64,000 bases of DNA from NCBI GenBank assembly GCA_020137815.1, contig CM035350.1:6200001-6264000 (forward strand). Direction: 5' to 3'. The position numbers and the translations under genes were made by a program. Source of the stretch: Hormiphora californensis (taxonomy: Eukaryota; Animalia; Ctenophora). The first letter of the stretch is position 1; each line of letters begins with the position of its first letter. The notes beneath the pieces are model-generated. The model did no database searches. It saw nothing but the letters and a program-made list of their open reading frames with translations, and was not told the origin of the DNA. Positions 1 to 20,254 of this stretch are shown here, in pieces.

Positions 1-3000
1 TGAGGGAAAAGATCTGGTACCACGGTGACATATCCACAACCTCGGCCGTGTGGAGGGCACAACAAATCAGGAACGGCATCCAGCAGCAGAAGTCGGTGAA
101 GCAAATCAAAGTAACTTTACGGCCAAGTGATGATGAACTTGAGTTCTGGACACTCGTTTTTTTGGAGAGGATCGCTATCAGAATATGGCATATGGCTACA
201 GCTACAAAACATAATAAATGGAAGCTAAGGTAAAGCCACACGTAGCCTGCCTGTGGGTCATCAGGGAGGACAAACGCCTTGAACATACACACTGGGTCAT
301 TCCCATAGAACGAGAGTTTTGTGCCACTGGTTGATCCGTTGTAATCGCGAGAAAACATCTCAGAAACCATATTTTGAAGTACATTCCAAGAGACGGAAGT
401 ACCGGCTGATTCACTAGACCCGTGATTCCCATGATAGACACGAACAATATTCAAAAGTTGTTTTTTGCCCGTCACTCCGAGGAACAATGGAATATCCTGA
501 TATATCAACCCATTGACAAACCAGTCATCTAAATCATCGATAAGAGGTAGGACAGCCACACCAACGGCAAAAACTATAACACCACCAAGGATCAACGTTA
601 GCTTCATTTTAAGTTTCGTAGTAACTTCCTCAGACCGCCGGTATCGTAGTGCTTGCAAGGTACCTTGAAGTCTAAAACAGCTGACTAATGCCATAACCAG
701 GGAGGAGATCGTCCCGCCAGTGGTATTGAGAACACCAATCATTTCACATGTTCGTCCTCCCATCCACTCAAACTGCCTTTCACAAAACTCCAAACCTATG
801 TAGTAGTGTATGTAGGTAAGGGTCAGGAGATAGATTGATGTTAGGAGATCTCCACAAGATATGGCGAGAACCATGACATTGTTCACGTATTTTCCAGTCT
901 TTCTTGAGTCACGTATCTCCCAAAAAGCCTCGTATGCACTGGCTAAACTGAGTAATGCACCTACTACCCCCATGATAGGTCGATATGACCAATATACCAT
1001 CGATCATGACGAGTTTCCTCATACATTGATCGTTACATTCGTCGGATAGGTCAGCACAGTCAATCTTCCCATCGCATTGCTGATCCACGGTCAGGATACC
1101 AGAGCCGTTTGAACATTGGAAGTTGTTAATACACTTCTCCTCATCCGATCTGTCTCCACAATCATCAACCAGATCACATACTTTCTCAAACAGGATGCAA
1201 TTAGTGTTTTTACATACGAAAAAGTTGTTGTGGTATTTATCCCGAACTTTTTCGTCACCGTAAGGGAATTCAACCCAAGGTTAAGAGAGAAAATTGTGTG
1301 TCTCAAGTTGGGGCATGCACTTTGGTGAACCGGCCGTTTCAGGGGACACTCTGTGTTGAAACATAGGCCCGAACAACTGTGGTAGACATATTCTTCTCCG
1401 TATAGATACCTGCAATCTTGTTTCTCGCTCAGAAGTACTAATTCGGTAGTAAAGTTCTTCCCGAAAAAACATATGAAATGGGTGGCTGAATATTGTAGAG
1501 TTACATTTTTGACCTTTTAGGCGAAGGAGGTTCTCTAGTCCATTGGTGCACACGACGCTTTTCAAAGTCTGTCCATTAAGTGTTTTGCTCAGAATCAACT
1601 TTCGAGAGACCACGACTTTTCCAGCATTACATACACCTTCATCGCATTTGTTGGGAAAAGAACAAAGAAACCCTAACTCCAAAAATCTTGTCCTATCTTC
1701 CTTACAAAGAAATACATCCGAGCATTGATGGGCCAGGTATTTGACCCGTGTTCTTGTCCCTTTGCCACATGTTTCCCAATCTTTCCGTTCATCTTGTCCA
1801 TCCAAACAATCAATCACCCCATCTTGGACCCATTCTACGGGTATCGGGAGGAGCCCTTCGTTCTGACTGAAACTACGAACACACGTTTGTTTGGTCAGTT
1901 TGGAACACAGCTCCATTTTCTCGTCCGCTCCCTCAGCACAGTCCGCTCGACTGTTGCACAGCAAGTGTTTCTGGATGGTACATTGCCGGTTGATCGTAGG
2001 ACACTTTGTCTCTATTCGATCATCACATACGTACGCAGTCCCGTGTTTTGGGCATAGCACATATATTGATACTGTCGTGAGATAGCCGTTCACCAAACAT
2101 GACCCTGCGACTTTGGCGGGGTCAGTGCAGTTTGTTTGGTCTAAACTAAAAATGCAGTAACTGGGCGAACTGGCCAAAAAGTACCCTGTTATGTGCTCGA
2201 CGGAGGGCAGGGGGATAAAGCAGCGAGACCCGTTGTTCAAGGGAAACAGATAAACATCAAAAGTGTCAATGTAGATACACGTTGCTACAGTTGGGGGAAC
2301 CCTATTCGGCCTATTGAATGGCTCAAGGAAGTATTCCCCTTCGGTTTGAACGACACCACCGTAACTATATCCATTGCAGTCCCGTTCGTCCACACACAAC
2401 AAAAAGTCCGCTTTTGATCGTCCCTCTTGACCGGGTCGTTGTATTTCAATATCATCACATACTCCGTCACACAATGCTCCGTCCTTCATCCAAATATCTA
2501 CCTCGCCCCCATCAACAGTACTAATTGTATACCGAACTTGTACCCGTGCACTTGGGCACTCTTGGAGTGACTCGTGGAGCCGATATAGATGAACCTCAGG
2601 GTCGAAACACAAAACCCCACAAGCAGGTGACGTGCGGAACAACTCTCTGGCACGGGTCGGGTTGTAACCAGATGCCCCGCAAGCCTGGTACTGGGCAGGG
2701 TCATTAGGACACATCTTGTCCACAAAGGTCTTCAGAGTGCGTGCATACAGGTCACATGTCTGTGTTATAACAAACCTCACTGTGGGCGAGCCAATGCAAG
2801 ACATTCTCGTCGAGCCAAGTGCAGTGAATTCACGAAACACTTTCACATTGGGAAGGTTGTTGGTACATTTCCGGACCAGGAAATCCTCGTTGATACTGGA
2901 TATCGGACACTCACCGTCATCATCCCCGGCCGTGGGAGTGGTGTTGGAAGGTGTTGTTTCACAGTCCACAAGGGTGACAAGACAAAGCAACAGCGCAATC

Positions 3001-3002
3001 AT
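1..3002 (-). CDS. LDLa-repeat-containing rhodopsin-class GPCR (GRL101/LGR-like); frameshifted, 3' end runs off the window
   Basis: ORF 1281..3002 has a signal peptide and Cys-rich LDLa-like motifs (LCDGVCDDIE, LCNSRADCAEGADE, QDGVIDCLDGQDE). Minus-strand translation of 1..130 gives RKVTLICFTDFCCWMPFLICCAL, the TM6 TDFxCWxP signature of LGR-type receptors. Confidence 0.8.
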
Positions 3003-3790: not shown

Positions 3791-4736
3791 CGAGAATGGA
3801 CAGGATTCAATATGAACAGTGAATTTTTCAGCAACTCAATTCCTGTTAACTAGGTTAACATACGCGATATGCTAGACTATGGAGCCTGGAGGGTGCGCCG
3901 GGGGTACTGGGGAGTAAAATGGAGTAAAAAACGAAAATTCAAGTTTTGGAAGCGAGGTTTTTTTACGTTTTTAACATTTACTGTTTCGTATCATTTTACG
4001 CTGCAAAAAACCAATTTAAATGGAACCGGCGAAAAAAAAAACAAAGTGTTTACGCTGCATTCTGTTAACTTCGGCGCCGCGCTCCCAGTGTTGAACCAGC
4101 ACTGTTTGATGAGGAAGATATTAAAATTAGCTTTACCAGCACTGTTTGACAGTATTGACACTGAATCAATCAGGAGATCAGCTGCCACAACCAAGGGAGG
4201 GGCAGGTCCCAGTGGAATGACCGATGCACTGTGGGCGAGAATGTTGTGTAGTAGAACATCGGCATCGGGGAAATACTCCGGCGTATCATTGGGCGTACTG
4301 TTGTCTGCCATCTACACAGTGACATCATTGAAGCAGCCGGGCCACTGCAGCTTGCCTCTGGTCTTCAGGGTGGAATTGAGGCTGCCGTCCACAGCATGTC
4401 TAGCATGTTTGATGACGATGGCTCTGAGGGAGTGCTCTTAGCGGATGCAACCAACGCCTTTAACGTGCTTAATCGGGCTACCGCTCTCGTCAATCTCCGA
4501 TACCTCTGCCCCCCTCTCGCCACCTTCACGATCAACATCTACCGATCCCCTGCCAAACTTTTCCTACAGAATGGAACTTTCATTCTGAGTAGTGAAGGCA
4601 CCACTCAGGGTTGCAACCTTGCATCTCCCTGGTACTGCATCAGCCTGAATCCTCTCATCTCAGCCCTTTCCGAGGCAGACTGTGCACAGATCTTCTTTGC
4701 CGATGACGGTGCATCTGTTGGGAAACTCTTGGCTAT

Positions 4737-4763
4737 ACACTACTTTAAACAAATTAATTTGAG
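4737..4763 (+). other. Genomic relic of ctenophore spliced leader (3' 27 nt)
   Basis: ACACTACTTTAAACAAATTAATTTGAG matches the 3' part of the Pleurobrachia SL as recalled, not searched. Its last 16 nt recur at 45380..45395. Confidence 0.8.
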
Positions 4764-4806
4764 TTTCAGCAATATGGCAAAGTAACGGCCCCAAAGGGCA
4801 GAACGA

Positions 4807-5790
4807 ATGAGAATGGCAAACGATCAAGCGGAGGAAACTAAACGAGGTTTAATATTCGATGTACAACGGTTCCTGACGTTGGTCAAGTGTGGAGAGAGCT
4901 CTGTTGCTGATAGTGTCAGAAAAACGATAAGGAGAAGTCCTGATTTTGATGACACTGAAATACCAGCAGAAATTAAAATCAACCCGGTACACACGAAGCG
5001 TGAGTTACAAATACTGATAGAAGAAATGTGCTGTGCGATCTTTCCAGTTCTAAAACACTTTCATCGCCATGTCTTTGCCGAGAAATCCCCTGAGGTGGAA
5101 CTCAAAGAGGAGCTCGACGAACTCAAAGAGGAGCGAGATGAACTGTTGAGAAAATCTGTCGAGTTGCAGGAGCAGGAGGATAAGTTGAAAGTGGAGTGTG
5201 ATGATCTTTTGAGAAGAACTGTCAAGTTACAAGAGCAGGTTATAGAGCTTCAGGGCGAGCAACTGCATCGAGTTACCGAGACGGTACAGAAGGATTTGCG
5301 TACTTTCTCAGCGGTCGTTACTCAGAATTGCAGGACTGCGTTTGCACCGAAAAAGATCCAGAAAGCCGTGGAAAAAGTTACGCACAAGCCAGTAGATACC
5401 GGCCCAGACAGATCGAAAAATCTGATGGTGTTTGGTCTACCGGAATGTGAGGATGAAACTGAATCTGTGTTAAAGGGTAAAATGGAAAATGTTTTGGCTG
5501 AGCTAGGCGAGAAACCGACGATAGAAGCTAAAAGGGTGGGTTTGAAACGGGGAGGAAGGGAGAGACCAGTGATTGTGAAGCTACAGAGTAAGGAAATGCT
5601 GCTGAGCCTTCTCCAAAAGGCAAAGCAGCTAAAACAGACAGAATCGTACTGCGGTGTATATCTTGCAAGGGATATGTCCTTCGCAGAGAGAAGTGAGAGG
5701 AGAGAACTCCAGCAAACATTGAAGGAGTTGAGGGATTCGAATCCTGGAGGACAATTCCGGGTACGGAGAGGGGTGATAGACTTTACATAA
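4807..5790 (+). CDS. LINE ORF1p-like protein (coiled coil + RRM + CTD), intact 327 aa
   Basis: Heptad coiled coil followed by RSKNLMVFGLPE, RPVIVKL and VYLARDMSFAERSERREL, typical of CR1/L2/L1-type ORF1p. No RT or endonuclease follows. Confidence 0.8.
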   Translation: MRMANDQAEETKRGLIFDVQRFLTLVKCGESSVADSVRKTIRRSPDFDDTEIPAEIKINPVHTKRELQILIEEMCCAIFPVLKHFHRHVFAEKSPEVELKEELDELKEERDELLRKSVELQEQEDKLKVECDDLLRRTVKLQEQVIELQGEQLHRVTETVQKDLRTFSAVVTQNCRTAFAPKKIQKAVEKVTHKPVDTGPDRSKNLMVFGLPECEDETESVLKGKMENVLAELGEKPTIEAKRVGLKRGGRERPVIVKLQSKEMLLSLLQKAKQLKQTESYCGVYLARDMSFAERSERRELQQTLKELRDSNPGGQFRVRRGVIDFT

Positions 5791-8700
5791 TAGGCATCTT
5801 CAATGAATATCTATTGGTGACCCGTATTTGCCCACAAAAAGGGGCTTATTTATACAATTAAATTGTGTAAGTTATAAAGATTTAATAATAATAATAATAA
5901 TTGGCTATGCGGAAGTGGTGGGACATTCTGTGCGAAGTTGGCCCAGGATTAGGCTATTTCCCCAATGGAAAGAAGTCTGTGCTGATCGTCAAACCTGGGC
6001 TTGAGAACACTGCCAGCTCTATTTTCAAGGACACAGGTGTGCATATTACATCAGAGGGACAGAGATATCTCGGAGCTCCCCTAGGTACCGACGAGTTTAA
6101 GAAACAGTACGTCAGTCAACAGGTTGAGACGTGGGCCCAGGAGCTTACAGACTTATCGGATTTTTCAACATCTGAGCCCCATCCATCATTCTCTGCTTAC
6201 ATCATGGGACTCTCCAAACGGTGGTTGTTTATTATGAGAACTACCAAGGACATCTCTGGTCTCTTCCAGCCACTGGAAGACATCATATCATCCACTTTCA
6301 TCCCAAAAACAATCAGCAACCAACTGACACCGAACAATCGGAAGCTCTTGTCACTCCCTGCCCGCCACGGGGGCCTTGGAATCTTTAATCCCGTCGAGAT
6401 CGCGGATTTCGAATACACCAGTTCTGCTGCAGCTACTGCACCACTCTCCAAAAATCATTAACGGACAGAAAACACAATTTGATCCAGAGAGTTTGCATTT
6501 GCTGAAGCGGGATCTGGTGTCTGCGAAATCCGAGATGTTGACCACCAAACGGCTGAGCCAGACCAAGGCTGAAGAGCTTGTGAGAGAGGCACTGCCACCC
6601 ACCGAACAGCGTTTTCACCAAGAGAGAACACGGCGAGGATCGTCCATATGGGTAACATCTCTCCCCCTCAAGGAACATAGGTTCAATCTGAACAAACAGG
6701 AGTTCTGGGACTCCATGTCCCTCCGCTACTGCTTGGAACTTGAGGGTAGACCACCAAACTGTCCGTGTGGAAAACCTAACACCACTGAACACAGCCTCTC
6801 TTGTCATCTTGGTGGTTACGTGCAGCTGCGGCATAATGAGATCCGGGACCTTACTGCAAACCTGCTGAAAGAGGCGGGATGCCGTGATGTTTCAAGAGAA
6901 CCCCATCTTCTCCCAATCACTGGCGAAACCTTCCGGCTAAAATCAGCAAACACTGCCAACGATGCTCGCCTTGATGTTGCTGCCAGGGATTTTTGGCTTC
7001 CCATGGACAAAATTTACACAGATGTGCGCATCTTCAATCCATTGGCTCCCACAAACAGTGCCATTCCTCTTGATACAGCTCTGAAACGACACGAGGACGA
7101 GAAAAAACGCTGCTATAACGAACGTGTCCTTGAGGTTGAACAGAGTTGTTTTTGCCCACTCGTGTTTTCAGTAACTGGTGCCCTGGGCAACGAGGCAGAA
7201 AAATTCTACAGGCGCCTTGCCAAGCTGCTTGCTGACAAAACACACCAGGCTTACTCTGACACCATCCGTTACATTAGGCAGCGGTTGTCTTTCACCCTGC
7301 TCAGAACAACTGTCATTAGCTTGAGATGGCATAGAGGCAATAAGTTCACTAAAACGAGGCAGTATAAGAGCGAACTCAATGACATTAACTTATTATATAA
7401 CACTTTTAATTCTACCAAATTTAATCAATTTTAATCAATGCAGTAATTTATTAATCTTCTCCCCCATGGGAGACCGGTATTTTCATATTGATATTGTTAT
7501 CTAATCCCATTTTAACCCCCTTTTAGAAAAAAAAAAAACGTAACGCGGTTTTTTTTTTTTAAAAAGCGTGCGTTTTTAATTTTTAATTTTTCCCGTTTCC
7601 GCATCTTCCCCGCTCTAACATTTGTCACTCTCTGTATTACACGGCATGTGTATGTCACGGTTTCACAGATGATAACTTCGCAGCGGCATGTGTATGTTAC
7701 GATTTCATAGATGTTAACTTTGCAGCGGGCGCCGGGCAGCCACCTTATCTTGGCCTTTCGAGTTTGTGTAGAGTTGAGTAGATGAGGTTGCAGACTGGCT
7801 GAGAGAGGCCGAAGAAAGAAGAGTGAAGACCATACACTCCGTTTTAAACGTTTTTCTCGATAAAAAACTATGCCTTGTATGTCCAGACAATAATATCCAC
7901 CGAAACAAACTCTGTATCGAAATACACACTCTCAAGGACTGCATGTTTGAAGGACAGCTAATTTATTTATTTATTGTTTGCATTATTTGTACAGTTTGTT
8001 TGACTTTGGTGGTCTGTCGGTGGGTTGATTTGTTGGTCTATTTATTTGTCGGTGGGTTGATTTGTTGGTCTATTTATTTGTCCCGATGTTCTAGTAACTG
8101 TTATGATCGTGTTTTGAATGTTCGTGGTATATGTTCGTGTTTTGTATGTTCGTGTTTTGTATGTTCGTGTTTATTTTCGTGTTCGTATGTTCGTGTTTTG
8201 TTATGCTCGTGTTTTGTATCTGTACCACTTTTGAAAGTGAGAGAGTATGTCAAGCGTAGGCTGTTGGTGCGTGCTCCATTATTTTACACTATAAAGTGGT
8301 ATATATAAATGATTATATTACATTTACATTTACATTTACACCTGTTTGACCCCCTATCAGGCCAATGCCCTGACTACAGTTCTCGCGCTCCTTATTTGAG
8401 AGAAATGAGAATAGGGCCATGCCAATGCTCTGAATGCTCTGACAGTTGACCCCGGTAGTAAGGTCCATATTCTACAAGCGTTGTCTTATCTGCAGACTGC
8501 ACAGTGCACAGCGCACTCTGTAGCATATATGCCCAACGGTGCTGTAGCAAAAAGGACATAGGCAATTGACTACAGCAATACCAATGTTGAGAATCTCTGC
8601 CTAAATCTCCTCAAATCTTCAAATTTTCAAAAATAGTTTGACTAATAATGTCGAGACATCCACATTTAAAACAAACGCTTCGGCCTCTCTGAACTCATCC

Positions 8701-15400: not shown

Positions 15401-18400
15401 TTTTCAATTATTTCACAATTCTTATAGATTTCAATGTCAATTTCGCCGTATGAACCCTATTTCGAATCGGTGGTGCTATGTGGAAATGATTTCGCTAGTT
15501 AGCGGGTTCAATATGGATTGATTTGATACGTGACTTCCCGTCGAATCGTGTCCTCATGAGAGGGTCAACAAATTCAGAAACTATTTTTTGAAAAAAAATC
15601 ATGGAGAGCACCGATCAAGGTGTTAAGAATCATTCTCTGAAATTTTGTAAAAAAGTTTGGAAAATATTTCAAAGTCAATTTTATGGAAAATTTTCTATGT
15701 CAATTTTTGTGTACGAATCGTGTTTCGAATCGGCATTGCTAAGCGGGAGTGATGTTGCTAATTAGTGGGTCCGAGATGGATTATGCTGATACGTGATCCC
15801 CCATCAAATCTAATTAGGAAGTTTAGGGGAAACGATTCATGTTTCGATAAATCCTGCTAATTAGCGAGAGCACTGCCGCACAGCATCACCGATTCGCAAC
15901 ACGATTCGTACGGCAAAATTGACATACAATTTTTTTACGAAATTGACTTTTGAAATATTTTACAAAGTTTTTTCAAAAAATTAAATGTTTCTCTAAAAAT
16001 TCATGGAGAGCATCGATCAAGGTATTGATCAATACCTTGATCGATGCTCTTTCTTTCACAAAATTTCAGGGAATGATTCTCGAGAATCATTCCCTGAAAT
16101 TTTGTGAAAATTTTTTTGTGAAAAATATTTTAAGTAAATTCTGGTATGTATGTATACGAATCGTGTTTCGAATCGACAATGCTAAACGGGAGTGATGTTG
16201 CTAATTAGTGGGTCCGAGATGGATTGTGCTGATACATGATCCCCATCAAATCTAATTAGGAAATTTAGAGAGACACGATTCATGGTTCGTTTAATCCTGC
16301 TAATTAGCAATACCATTCCCGTATCGCATTGCCGATTCGAAACACGATTCGTACGCAAAAATTGACATAGAAAATTTTCGATAAAATTGACTTTGAAATT
16401 TTTTTCACAAAATTGACTTTGAAATTTTTTCCAAACTTTTTTAACAAAATTTCACAGAATGATTCTCAATACCTTGATCGGTGCTCTCCATGACTTTTTA
16501 GAGAAACATTTATACAAAAAATTTTGGTATGGTTCGGTTCGGTTCGGTTACCGAAATTCGGTTCGGTTCGGTTCGGTTCGGTTCGGTAAAAAAGTTTTTC
16601 AAATTCGGTTCGGTTCGGTTCGGTAGAAAAAAACCCGGTTCGGTCGTTTCCTGCGAAAAATACTGGGTTTGACCGGGAATTGAACCAGGGACCTCCAGAG
16701 AGACATGCTCGGAGCTATAAACCACTAAGCTACCAAACCCTATGTACTGATCGCATTTCATCGCTCTATATTCAAGCTCCTGCCCTTAGCTAGACACCAT
16801 GTGATAAAGGGAAGTAATTTTGATATCTCCTTCTGGTGATCAACACACACACACGCCCTCTGTACAACAGTTTAATGGGGAATCTCACACATACACGGGC
16901 AGAACTCGGTTAAGGAGAGATTAATTAGTATTCTGAATAATGAGTTCAGAGCAAGAATTAAATAATAATAATAATAATAATAATATTAAGTTTTGTATAC
17001 CGCCACAGACACGACAGGGCCAGATAAGTAAAACTGTAACTGACACTGACGAGCTTCAGAGCGGTATACCTCACGCGAAAAGGTCCTTATATTCTCACAC
17101 ACTTTGGAAAAAATTAACTCCTAGTTCAAGATATACTAATTAGATAACTGGTCACATAACGCTTAAAAACTGTTTAGATGAAAAAATTACAGACTTTATT
17201 AAATAAAGGGAACAAAGCCAACAGCCCACACACTACTTATCAGCAGCTCAACAATACTGATAAAAAAGCCCTAAGTGTAAATGGTGAGCACGCCTAAAGA
17301 CCGCCTACTGACAGATGGGGAGCACGGTGAACAACTCAGACGCCACACCGGGAGTCTTCAGGGGTAGGAGGGAACGCTTCTAGGAAGAGTCTGGTCTTCA
17401 GCCTAGATTTGAACAACTCAATGGGGTGAACAGATCTCAGGTCTAGAGGTAAAGAGTTCCATACCGTCGGTAGAAACACCGAAATCCTCCTTCTCCTCAG
17501 TTTAGAGTTTGCGTTAACACTCGAGAGTTTAGGATATTTCAGCTTATAGAAGTCAATCACTGAATTCGCCCTCGTTGGTCTCATACCCAGAATATCATCA
17601 TCCCTAGGGACCAGTTCCAGCAAATACTCTGGAGCTGTTCCACGCACAATTTTGTACGCTAACAGGCAGGCCTTGAACGTTAGTCTCTGCTGTATTGGGA
17701 GGATATGAGCTTCCTTGAAATACTCATCATAGCTATCCTGATGTCCTCGTAGGTTATAGATGAACCGTACGCAGGAGTTTAGAACCTTTTGAAGATTGTT
17801 TAGAATCCGTTTTGGGAGTCCACAGTAGAGGATATTGCAGTAGTCTATCTTTGATATGACTAATTGCTTCACCAGAAGAATCCGTGTGCTATTGTCCAAA
17901 CACTTATTGAGTTGCCATAGGTTCTTGAGTTGCAGTCCACATTGTTTCTTAACATTGTTCACCTGCCTCTCCAGGGTAAGATGCTCATCCAGAAGTATTC
18001 CTAGAGTCTTCCCTGTCCTTCCTCTGCATTCCATGGGCTGCAACACAGCGTCACCAAACCTAATTTCCGGATCAAATACCAGCTTCTCAAGAGAACTTGA
18101 TTTTCCCAGAAGAACAAACTCAGTCTTACTCTCGTTACATTTGAGCCAATGCTGTACCATCCAGTTCTTAATAGAAGCGAGACACTCCTCAATACTGGTC
18201 TTAGTAGCTGTCCATCCCTCACTATCCGTTGGGACCAGTCCCACATATAACTGGGAATCATCTGCATACAGCTTTATCATTAGACCATACGGTCTAGCAA
18301 TATCCTGTAGCTCCTCTATGTACAACAGGAATAATACAGGACCTAACAATGACCCCTGTGGTACTCCACAGATGAGAGCAATAACCTCAGAGAGCTCACC

Positions 18401-20254
18401 ATGGACACTTACCCTGTAACTCCTGGGAATAGGGAAGAAAATCGAAAAATACTGGGTTTGACCGGGAATTGAACCAGGGACCTCCAGAGAGACATGCTCG
18501 GAGCTATAAACCACTAAGCTACCAAACCCTATGTACTGATCGCATTTCATCGCTCTATATTCAAGCTCCTGCCCTTAGCTAGACACCATGTGATAAAGGG
18601 AAGTAATTTTGATATCTCCTTCTGGTGATCAACACACACACACGCCCTCTGTACAACAGTTTAATGGGGAATCTCACACATACACGGGCAGAACTCGGTT
18701 AAGGAGAGATTAATTAGTATTCTGAATAATGAGTTCAGAGCAAGAATTAAATAGGGAAGAAAATCGAAAAATACTGGGTTTGACCGGGAATTGAACCAGG
18801 GACCTCCAGAGAGACATGCTCGGAGCTATAAACCACTGGTTCAATTCCCGGTCAAACCCAGTATTTTTCGATTTTCTTCCCTATTTAATTCTTGCTCTGA
18901 ACTCATTATTCAGAATACTATCCATTTTGGTTACAAAATAAAACTTCACACATTGGTAAGGGAGGGATAACTTCATCACCAACTATCCACTAACATGAAT
19001 GCTTAATTCCTGTTTAATTCCACTATCATGAGCCCACACGGGGCCACACAGAACATGAGACTTACATTTGATTTCTGAGGACCTTCTTCAGCTCACACAC
19101 CTCAATAAACCCACTCTGATCCTTATCAATGTCCTCAAACAACTCCCCCAACTCATCCTCGCTGATCGATCCCAGATAGGAGTTTAGCATCGACTAGGGA
19201 TGGAGGGGTTATAATTGGGAATATGAGTTCAGCATCGACTAGGGAGAGAGGGGTTATTGGGAGGTAGATCTTTCTGGCACCAGAAGAAAGAAAATACAGT
19301 AAAATATCAATACAATAGCAATGTACAACAATTACCTTGAACTCGGCCCGATCTATTTTGTGGTTTCCATCGCTATCAAACTGGTTCATTTCCTTCTTGA
19401 TCTCGTCATCCAGGAAATTCTCGTCTTTGAGCAGTCTCTCCAGGACCTGGATCATCAGAGCAGTATCGGCCGTCTCAATGTCACTCATGATGGCACGGGG
19501 TGATCTGCTATTTAGAGGAGTGGCCGTGTATTAGTGATTGGTGGGCCTCCTCGTGAGACAAATTGTATAGACTAATAAAACACTATTGTTTTCTATTTGA
19601 TGGGTGGTATAAGTTATGTTAGTTTAGACAAGAAGGAGAAGGGTAGTACGTCAAGGCTGTGACGTGTATAATAGGGGGAGACTCTATAATAGCCCAACTG
19701 TAAGCTAAGTTACCAAGGGTAATTAGGTCTAAAAAGAGTACCAAGAGATTGCCTTGCTCGACCCTTTTTCACCGCACCCCGCACGGGAAACAAATATAAA
19801 GGAGGGTTAGAACAAGATTCTAACAAATAATATTTCAGTTTTAGAAAGAGGGACGGTACCACAGCAAGCCCACCACATGCCCCCACAGCAGCACCCGTCC
19901 CAGTACCCAGCGGAGCACTATGGGGATGCAGGGTATGGCACTGCATCCTTCAACCCTTATGCTCAGGAGTTTGCCGTTACTGACCACGACGGTCGACATC
20001 AGCAACAGGTGGGAAGAAGAAGAAGGATCTTTAAAGGATCCTAAATAGCTTGTGTTAATTAATTAATGTTATAGGCACTGTTCAAGGCAAATTCCGGGCT
20101 TGTGTTGTTCAAGTTGGGAAATGAAAACTTGCATATCAATAAACTTGCATATCAACAAACTTGGCTTGCTGATTATTATTGCTTCTACACATTCTCTCTT
20201 TTTCTCTCTATCTTTCTTTATTTATCTCTGTCCCTCCTTTTTATCTCTCTCCCC

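Follow-up and report, generated by a model that had tools for sequence, protein, structure and literature searches.

The subject of this analysis is a 1164-bp insert at positions 4737–5900 of a 64,000-nucleotide (nt) stretch of the ctenophore Hormiphora californensis (GenBank assembly GCA_020137815.1, contig CM035350.1, positions 6,200,001 to 6,264,000 of the forward strand), which is called the window in the following. With a probability of about 80%, the insert is a copy of a family of non-autonomous non-LTR retroposons (LTR, long terminal repeat), a "half-LINE" (LINE, long interspersed nuclear element) that encodes only a protein resembling ORF1p of LINE-1 (L1; ORF, open reading frame) and that received its 5' end from host trans-splicing. 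This core is well supported, whereas the transcription step of the mechanism proposed below is one that we infer. In H. californensis, with a genome of 110 Mb on 13 chromosomes, a 44-nt trans-spliced leader (SL) was found on 56% of Iso-Seq reads (PMC8527503).

The spliced-leader head and the copy family

The first 27 nt of the insert are identical to the last 27 nt of this published leader (PMC8527503). The initial annotation had taken the 27-mer for the 3' part of the Pleurobrachia SL, and with 27 of 27 positions matching it is the leader of the species itself. It occurs once in the window, as compared with 0 occurrences expected by chance. The leader copy ends exactly at the last base of the exon and lies within the target-site duplication, as in a retrocopy of an SL trans-spliced RNA. 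It is not followed by GT but by TTTCAG and the ORF, and the locus is therefore not an SL RNA gene.

The borders of the insert are sharp, and it lies between two copies of the 8-bp sequence TTGGCTAT (Table 1). Its 3' untranslated region (UTR) of 110 nt folds into two hairpins, where one had been described, and it ends in (TAA)6 and not in poly(A). Removal of the insert had been proposed to restore the frame of the interrupted host. If codons are counted from 4396, where the host ORF starts, the last one before the insert has only two bases (ending at 4736); its third base is 5909, which is in frame with the ORF listed from 5901. This continuity is a matter of arithmetic only. An uninterrupted site was found in a 967-nt public read contig, which covers 4584–4736 and resumes at 5910–6400 with zero mismatches and one copy of the octamer. 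This empty-site contig fixes the borders of the insert, but it might be a paralogous site and not an allele, because the downstream host flank (5909–6400) has two further copies in the genome that are 100% identical. For the same reason an insertion polymorphism is not provable from this contig.

The genome was searched over 110.69 Mb in 45 contigs, and in each search only the best-scoring candidates were scored. With the insert as query, 46 matches were obtained from 169 first-look candidates, and 19 full-length copies were read. According to the identity of their aligned bodies to the window copy, they fall into three subfamilies (~96–98%, ~89–90%, and ~74%), and the members of the ~89–90% subfamily are 98–100% identical to one another. 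The tails are of the (TAA)n type in all 19 copies, and target duplications of 6–26 bp abut head and tail, clearly so in at least 14 of them. Copies truncated at the 5' end share the 3' end and begin at positions 269, 791, and ~1093–1113. From the target duplications, the (TAA)n tails, and the 5'-truncated relatives it follows that the copies arose by target-primed reverse transcription, and that the template was an RNA starting with the 5' end of the leader. The family is recently active. The view of the initial annotation that the insert belongs to a family, and is not a one-off processed pseudogene, was thus borne out: SL heads, target duplications, and (TAA)n tails characterize a family of which at least 19 copies are full-length. 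A further relative (contig C9:6247541-6252712, minus strand) is split by ~4 kb, with the N-terminal ORF1-like part lying in an open frame of 554 amino acids (aa); it may either contain a nested insertion or be a relative of greater length.

All 19 full-length copies begin with the leader, and the heads start right at the target duplication, on its inner side. The leader-matching stretch has a length of 27, 29, 33, 36, or 39–44 nt, the window copy being the shortest; its 27-nt head is a 5' truncation particular to this copy, as sister copies keep 39–44 nt of the leader. Extra letters 5' of the leader match were found in one of the 19 copies (L009, contig C6:7568156 region), where 22 nt similar but not equal to the 5' part of the leader stand between the duplication and CAACAC and may be a second leader variant. 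In L002, one base of the head is changed. Even in the subfamily with a body only ~74% identical to the window copy, the leader is identical at 27 of 27 positions.

The position of the duplications also bears on whether the leader could be target DNA. LINEs specific for SL genes are known in nematodes and trypanosomes (PMC4640811, in part), and if the element targeted SL RNA genes in the manner of NeSL, SLACS, and CZAR, the leader would be target DNA and not a part of it. The probability of this explanation is practically negligible, as the duplications enclose the leader and the flanking sequence differs at every copy. For the window copy it is refuted by the empty site, which is a reverse transcriptase (RT) coding frame without a leader.

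The junction between leader and body

The strongest indication of the origin of the head comes from its junction to the body. In 10 of the 19 copies the SL is followed by TTTCAG and CAAY (long junction), and in four it is followed directly by CAAY (short junction). In the ~74% subfamily the corresponding forms are SL+CAG+GTAG (four copies) and SL+GTAG (one copy). The difference always consists of one AG-ended unit and is located exactly at the end of the leader. Between L004 (long) and L012 (short), whose bodies show 100% identity, the difference is exactly TTTCAG, while L023 (short) and L024 (long) are 99.6% identical, and L003 is a short-junction form within the window copy's own subfamily. 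The same dimorphism was found in an autonomous LINE, of which the copies L065 (long) and L067 (short) are 99% identical. Within the present family, the short junction arose at least four times independently, once between the otherwise 100% identical copies.

As this dimorphism lies at AG-ended units and is repeated, trans-splicing recurs, and the two junction forms match what is predicted for alternative neighbouring 3' splice sites and not what is predicted for an inherited, fixed 5' end. The initial annotation had called TTTCAG acceptor-like and had proposed a trans-spliced RNA as template. Both proposals could be strengthened: the absence of exactly these 6 nt from some copies shows that TTTCAG was used as an alternative trans-splice acceptor, and the SL was joined at its 3' end to the AG acceptor of the element repeatedly, at two alternative acceptors, and in lineages that are closely related. 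Tandem leader-leader copies were counted as 0 in the genome, which would fit an acceptor located at the AG with which the DNA-encoded leader terminates, with the old leader being replaced as a whole.

The head might alternatively be the inherited 5' end of the element and perhaps an internal promoter, with trans-splicing having occurred once long ago or never. It starts every full-length copy, a sub-lineage with the short junction (L009 and L011) seems to have been propagated, and the leader sequence belongs to the promoter of the SL gene in some nematodes. This explanation is nevertheless unlikely in view of the exact one-unit difference in at least four independent lineages, including the pair with identical bodies. 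In addition, the head shows perfect conservation despite a divergence of 26% in 5' UTRs and bodies, and unrelated LINE families bear the same head.

Another origin of the head would be its addition during reverse transcription, by a template switch to the SL RNA or to a leader-capped mRNA as in the U6-L1 chimeras. LINE enzymes do switch templates, and head-to-head leader fold-backs are present in the genome. Switching would, however, yield variable body ends, whereas the body always starts right after AG, and the leader stops exactly at the exon boundary and never runs into the intron of the SL RNA, there being no GT after the leader of the window copy. A template switch is therefore regarded as very unlikely, and recurrent trans-splicing of the element's RNA remains the preferred origin of the head.

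The encoded protein and possible sources of the reverse transcriptase

The sole ORF of the insert encodes 327 aa, and neither an RT nor an endonuclease was matched within the 1164 bp. The element is therefore non-autonomous and not an autonomous LINE. An AlphaFold model (mean predicted local distance difference test (pLDDT) score of 72), for which nine proteins of the family were aligned, predicts a long helix at residues 95–178 and an alpha/beta domain at residues 205–326. In Foldseek, the ten best matches in the PDB were all human LINE-1 ORF1p chains (2ykp, 2yko, 2ykq, 2ldy, and 2w7a; E value 1.5e-6), and comparison to the RRM domain alone (2w7a) yielded a template modelling (TM) score of 0.69 and a root-mean-square deviation of 3.4. 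The layout of the predicted model is that of a type II ORF1p with coiled coil, RRM, and C-terminal domain. A sequence search of the PDB with a profile of the nine family proteins gave no match, and the designation "ORF1p-like" is supported by the predicted fold and not by sequence. With this qualification, the initial description as one intact ORF1p-like protein without RT holds.

ORFs are intact in 15 of the 19 copies and encode 320–327 aa. The ratio of nonsynonymous to synonymous substitution rates (dN/dS) was 0.28–0.35 between subfamilies, whereas very young copy pairs hold too few changes to be judged by this measure. The value of about 0.3, which the initial annotation had left to be computed, indicates purifying selection and fits the protein being needed for spread. 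A seawater metatranscriptome contains a stretch of 434 nt that matches the window ORF with full identity, which is weak evidence of expression. A protein with 88% identity is present in Pleurobrachia bachei.

With the window protein as query, the genome yielded 607 first-look candidates (superfamily), and nearly all of the 122 that were scored are open frames of ~320–370 aa with 36–46% identity. These numbers are relevant for another explanation, namely that the insert is a single processed pseudogene or retrogene, derived from a host gene that encodes a coiled-coil RRM protein. A single intact ORF without RT would be compatible with it, but the family comprises tens of copies within this superfamily, some of them 5'-truncated, the tail is a LINE-type microsatellite and not poly(A), and the predicted fold is that of L1 ORF1p. 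A lone retrogene is thus most improbable.

Possible donors of the RT were looked for among the LINEs of the genome. L065 and L067 (contigs C10:7436700-7444900 and C4:2770300-2778500) are copies of a 4.5-kb autonomous SL-headed LINE with an ORF1 of 438 aa and with APE endonuclease and RT in ORF2. Over the first 67 nt (the leader and the next 40 nt) they are 96% identical to the window family, which suggests, as far as can be told from this stretch of sequence, that the L065-type LINE and the ORF1-only family exchanged a 5' UTR module recently. The common 5' UTR is a hint that the RT might come from the L065-type LINE, and it proves nothing. As a donor this LINE was rejected, as its tail is (TTGTAAAC)n and its ORF1 is unrelated. 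The LINE in L064 was rejected as well, since its tail is (ATT)n and no ORF1-only family was matched by its 3' UTR.

A mechanism for the spread of the half-LINE can be proposed as follows. Transcription of a new copy would take place as part of a longer transcript of the host or of a neighbour. Two 3' splice sites would be available in this RNA, namely the terminal ...TTTGAG of the DNA-encoded leader and the TTTCAG that follows, so that trans-splicing would free the element from the co-transcript and provide it with a new full-length leader bearing a cap. The RNA of the element might be bound in cis by its ORF1-like protein, and RT and endonuclease might be supplied in trans by one of the SL-headed autonomous LINEs of the genome.

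Several points weigh against the half-LINE with a trans-spliced 5' end. The Pfam model for L1 ORF1 does not match the protein, for which Pfam yielded only coiled-coil noise. The initial annotation had envisaged an RT borrowed in trans, but among the scored genome matches there was no autonomous LINE sharing the 3' hairpin and the (TAA)n tail, and a search with the last 120 nt gave only ORF1-only relatives and truncated copies. Between 119 ORF1-like matches and the 150 best RT matches, 0 ORF1-ORF2 pairs were found. Both the promoter-free read-through and the use of the leader's own AG as acceptor are what we infer, and the public runs consist of assembled contigs, which cannot show RNA starts or precursors. 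Finally, the junction dimorphism could have come about by repeated small deletions, which is unlikely because the differences fit the AG sites exactly.

Leader copies across the genome and features of the window

The exact 27-mer was found 527 times in the genome, compared with 0 for the control. A 23-nt pattern consisting of the 3' end of the leader and GT, as is required of an SL RNA gene, occurs at 89 places, and some of these are retroposons whose body starts with GT by chance. As 527 27-mers stand against only 89 leader+GT places, most "leader loci" appear to be retroelement heads. Eight leader+GT sites are located within 14 kb on contig C13 (3181666-3195338), and this cluster is the foremost candidate for genuine SL RNA genes. 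In the genome paper of H. californensis, 718 leader sequences are treated as leader loci (PMC8527503), most of which would be heads of retroelements and not leader genes. Such a re-reading matters for gene models that begin at the "nearest leader locus".

A sample of 30 consecutive leader sites on contig 1 contained 12 that head ORF1-like elements, six with a LINE-type ORF1, of which one was read on into ORF2, and one with a PHD-finger ORF. Several of the remaining sites head non-coding repeats, and one (L032, contig C1:428037) resembles a leader gene, having a TATA-rich upstream region, a GT donor, and a shorter 5' part of the leader. A PHD finger in the first ORF was observed in the SL-headed L036 and in L067:134-1708 (minus strand).

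Other ORF1-only families follow the same plan of a leader, ~1.0–1.1 kb with one ORF, and a short 3' UTR. This plan is common to families that are only 28–40% identical in protein and that end in different tails, namely (TAA)n, (ATT)n, (ATGTTT)n, (GAT)n, and (TTGATA)n. Within 10–40 nt past the leader, several unrelated SL-headed families share a mini upstream ORF (ATG, 2–5 codons, and a stop), a GCCC-loop-GGGC hairpin, and CAG; the set was seen in the window at 4774–4799 and in L005, L020, L039/L068, L033/L044, L031/L050, and L065, and a comparable GCCC...GGGC hairpin is present in the 3' UTR. It may be a common signal for translation or packaging. Head-to-head leader pairs at a distance of 40–90 nt form fold-backs and are followed by CTGATGA...GAAAC-like motifs. 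They were observed at L046/L047 (C1:3434329-3434395), L043, and L052, as well as at further sites such as C2:3466799/3466888 and C3:400014/400077. A hammerhead was not detected by Rfam in these leader-headed elements at the gathering score or at E<=1, and only hairpin noise was obtained.

A wider reading is tentative, and we would put it at somewhat less than even odds. The DNA copy of the leader would itself be the trans-splice acceptor module of the element, by which the host would excise and re-cap any insertion into transcribed DNA and supply it with a new leader of full length, without the element having a promoter of its own. A guild of ORF1-only half-LINEs with several tails, autonomous LINEs, and other retroelements would rely on this module, most of the ~500–700 "leader loci" would be retroelement heads, and the ORF1-only elements would form a long-lived parasitic lineage of the SL-headed LINEs.

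Table 1. Parts of the insert and its host site, in window coordinates
Feature	Position	Strand	Evidence
Left target-site duplication TTGGCTAT	4729–4736	+	Sequence; empty-site contig
DNA copy of the host SL (last 27 nt), 5'-truncated head	4737–4763	+	
TTTCAG, alternative trans-splice acceptor, missing in short-junction copies	4764–4769	+	
Mini upstream ORF: ATG, two codons, and TAA; several SL-headed families share it	4774–4785	+	
5' UTR hairpin GCCC-loop-GGGC, then CAG; stem constant and loop variable across families	4788–4799	+	
Intact ORF (327 aa) with long coiled-coil helix, RRM-like and C-terminal domains (predicted L1 ORF1p-like fold)	4807–5790	+	
3' UTR hairpin 1 (GCCC...GGGC)	5830–5845	+	
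3' terminal hairpin 2, 11-bp stem	5848–5872	+	
(TAA)6 tail directly against the right duplication, without poly(A)	5883–5900	+	
Right target-site duplication TTGGCTAT	5901–5908	+	
Host: 5'-truncated RT-bearing retroelement, frame broken by the insert (context, outside the element)	3869–7434	+	

The host of the insert gave a weak match to RVT_1 of Pfam in the flank at 4396–4728. Its C-terminal part contains a CPCG...H...C motif followed by RHNEIRD, which we take to be typical of LINEs with a restriction-like endonuclease (R2/CRE type). Its 3' part is present in two further copies with 100% identity, and this host retroelement was thus active recently too. It is adjoined by a cysteine-rich open frame of 573 aa on the minus strand (1281–3002). 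Elsewhere in the window, two tRNA matches of equal score (16665–16739 and 18454–18528, both on the minus strand) lie 1.8 kb apart and are probably a duplicated unit.

Relation to known systems

A description of SL-headed retroposons in ctenophores was not found in the literature searched, in which only passing mentions for flatworms and SL-tagged retrogenes of dinoflagellates were encountered. LINE-type elements lose their 5' ends easily and need to have them rebuilt, a need known to be served by internal promoters and by self-cleaving ribozymes. In the present family, host trans-splicing appears to rebuild the 5' end, and the added leader is then inscribed in each new copy. The heads thereby document naturally, by a sequence tag, which RNAs served as templates of reverse transcription. 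With 1.2 kb and one protein, the element might also serve as a compact system for how ORF1p-only elements recruit a foreign RT.

With regard to function, the closest analogues are the ribozymes resembling that of hepatitis delta virus (HDV) at the 5' ends of R2, L1Tc, and related LINEs (PMC3185411 and PMC4035085). There, as is proposed here, an element lacking a dependable promoter is freed from a co-transcript at an exact 5' end, but self-cleavage leaves this end uncapped, whereas here the host adds a capped leader that is later written into DNA. The I factor of Drosophila has a (TAA)n tail and not poly(A), is autonomous, and has its own internal promoter. As far as these features are concerned, it is like the window family in its tail and unlike it in autonomy and, by the mechanism proposed, in promoter.

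In parasitic flatworms, leader pieces were reported on LINE and LTR loci (PMC12582326 and PMC5832876). There, too, retrotransposon transcripts were integrated after receiving a leader, but this was a passing remark on discarded loci and did not include family anatomy, junction analysis, or ORF1-only elements. Retrogenes of dinoflagellates bear relics of the spliced leader (PMC5585692, PMC6050394, and PMC12014239). As in the window family, a DNA-encoded leader at the 5' end proves a trans-spliced template, and a retrocopy can be trans-spliced again. The dinoflagellate cases differ in that they concern host genes with truncated and often tandem relics, whereas mobile families without tandems, and with presumed whole replacement of the leader, are found here.

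HAL1 ("half-L1") elements are reportedly ORF1-only, non-autonomous LINE derivatives of mammals. The window family is like them in having only a protein of the ORF1p type (coiled coil, RRM, and C-terminal domain) without RT, multiple subfamilies, and LINE-type insertion with target duplications, 5' truncation, and an ORF under selection. It differs in that its 5' end is the host SL, that the tail consists of a hairpin and (TAA)n and not of poly(A), and that the scored matches did not include a parent LINE related to it in ORF1 or 3' end. In addition, its architecture spans families of low protein identity with different microsatellite tails. Taken together, the closest architecture is that reported for mammalian HAL1, and the closest phenomenon is that of the leader relics of dinoflagellates.

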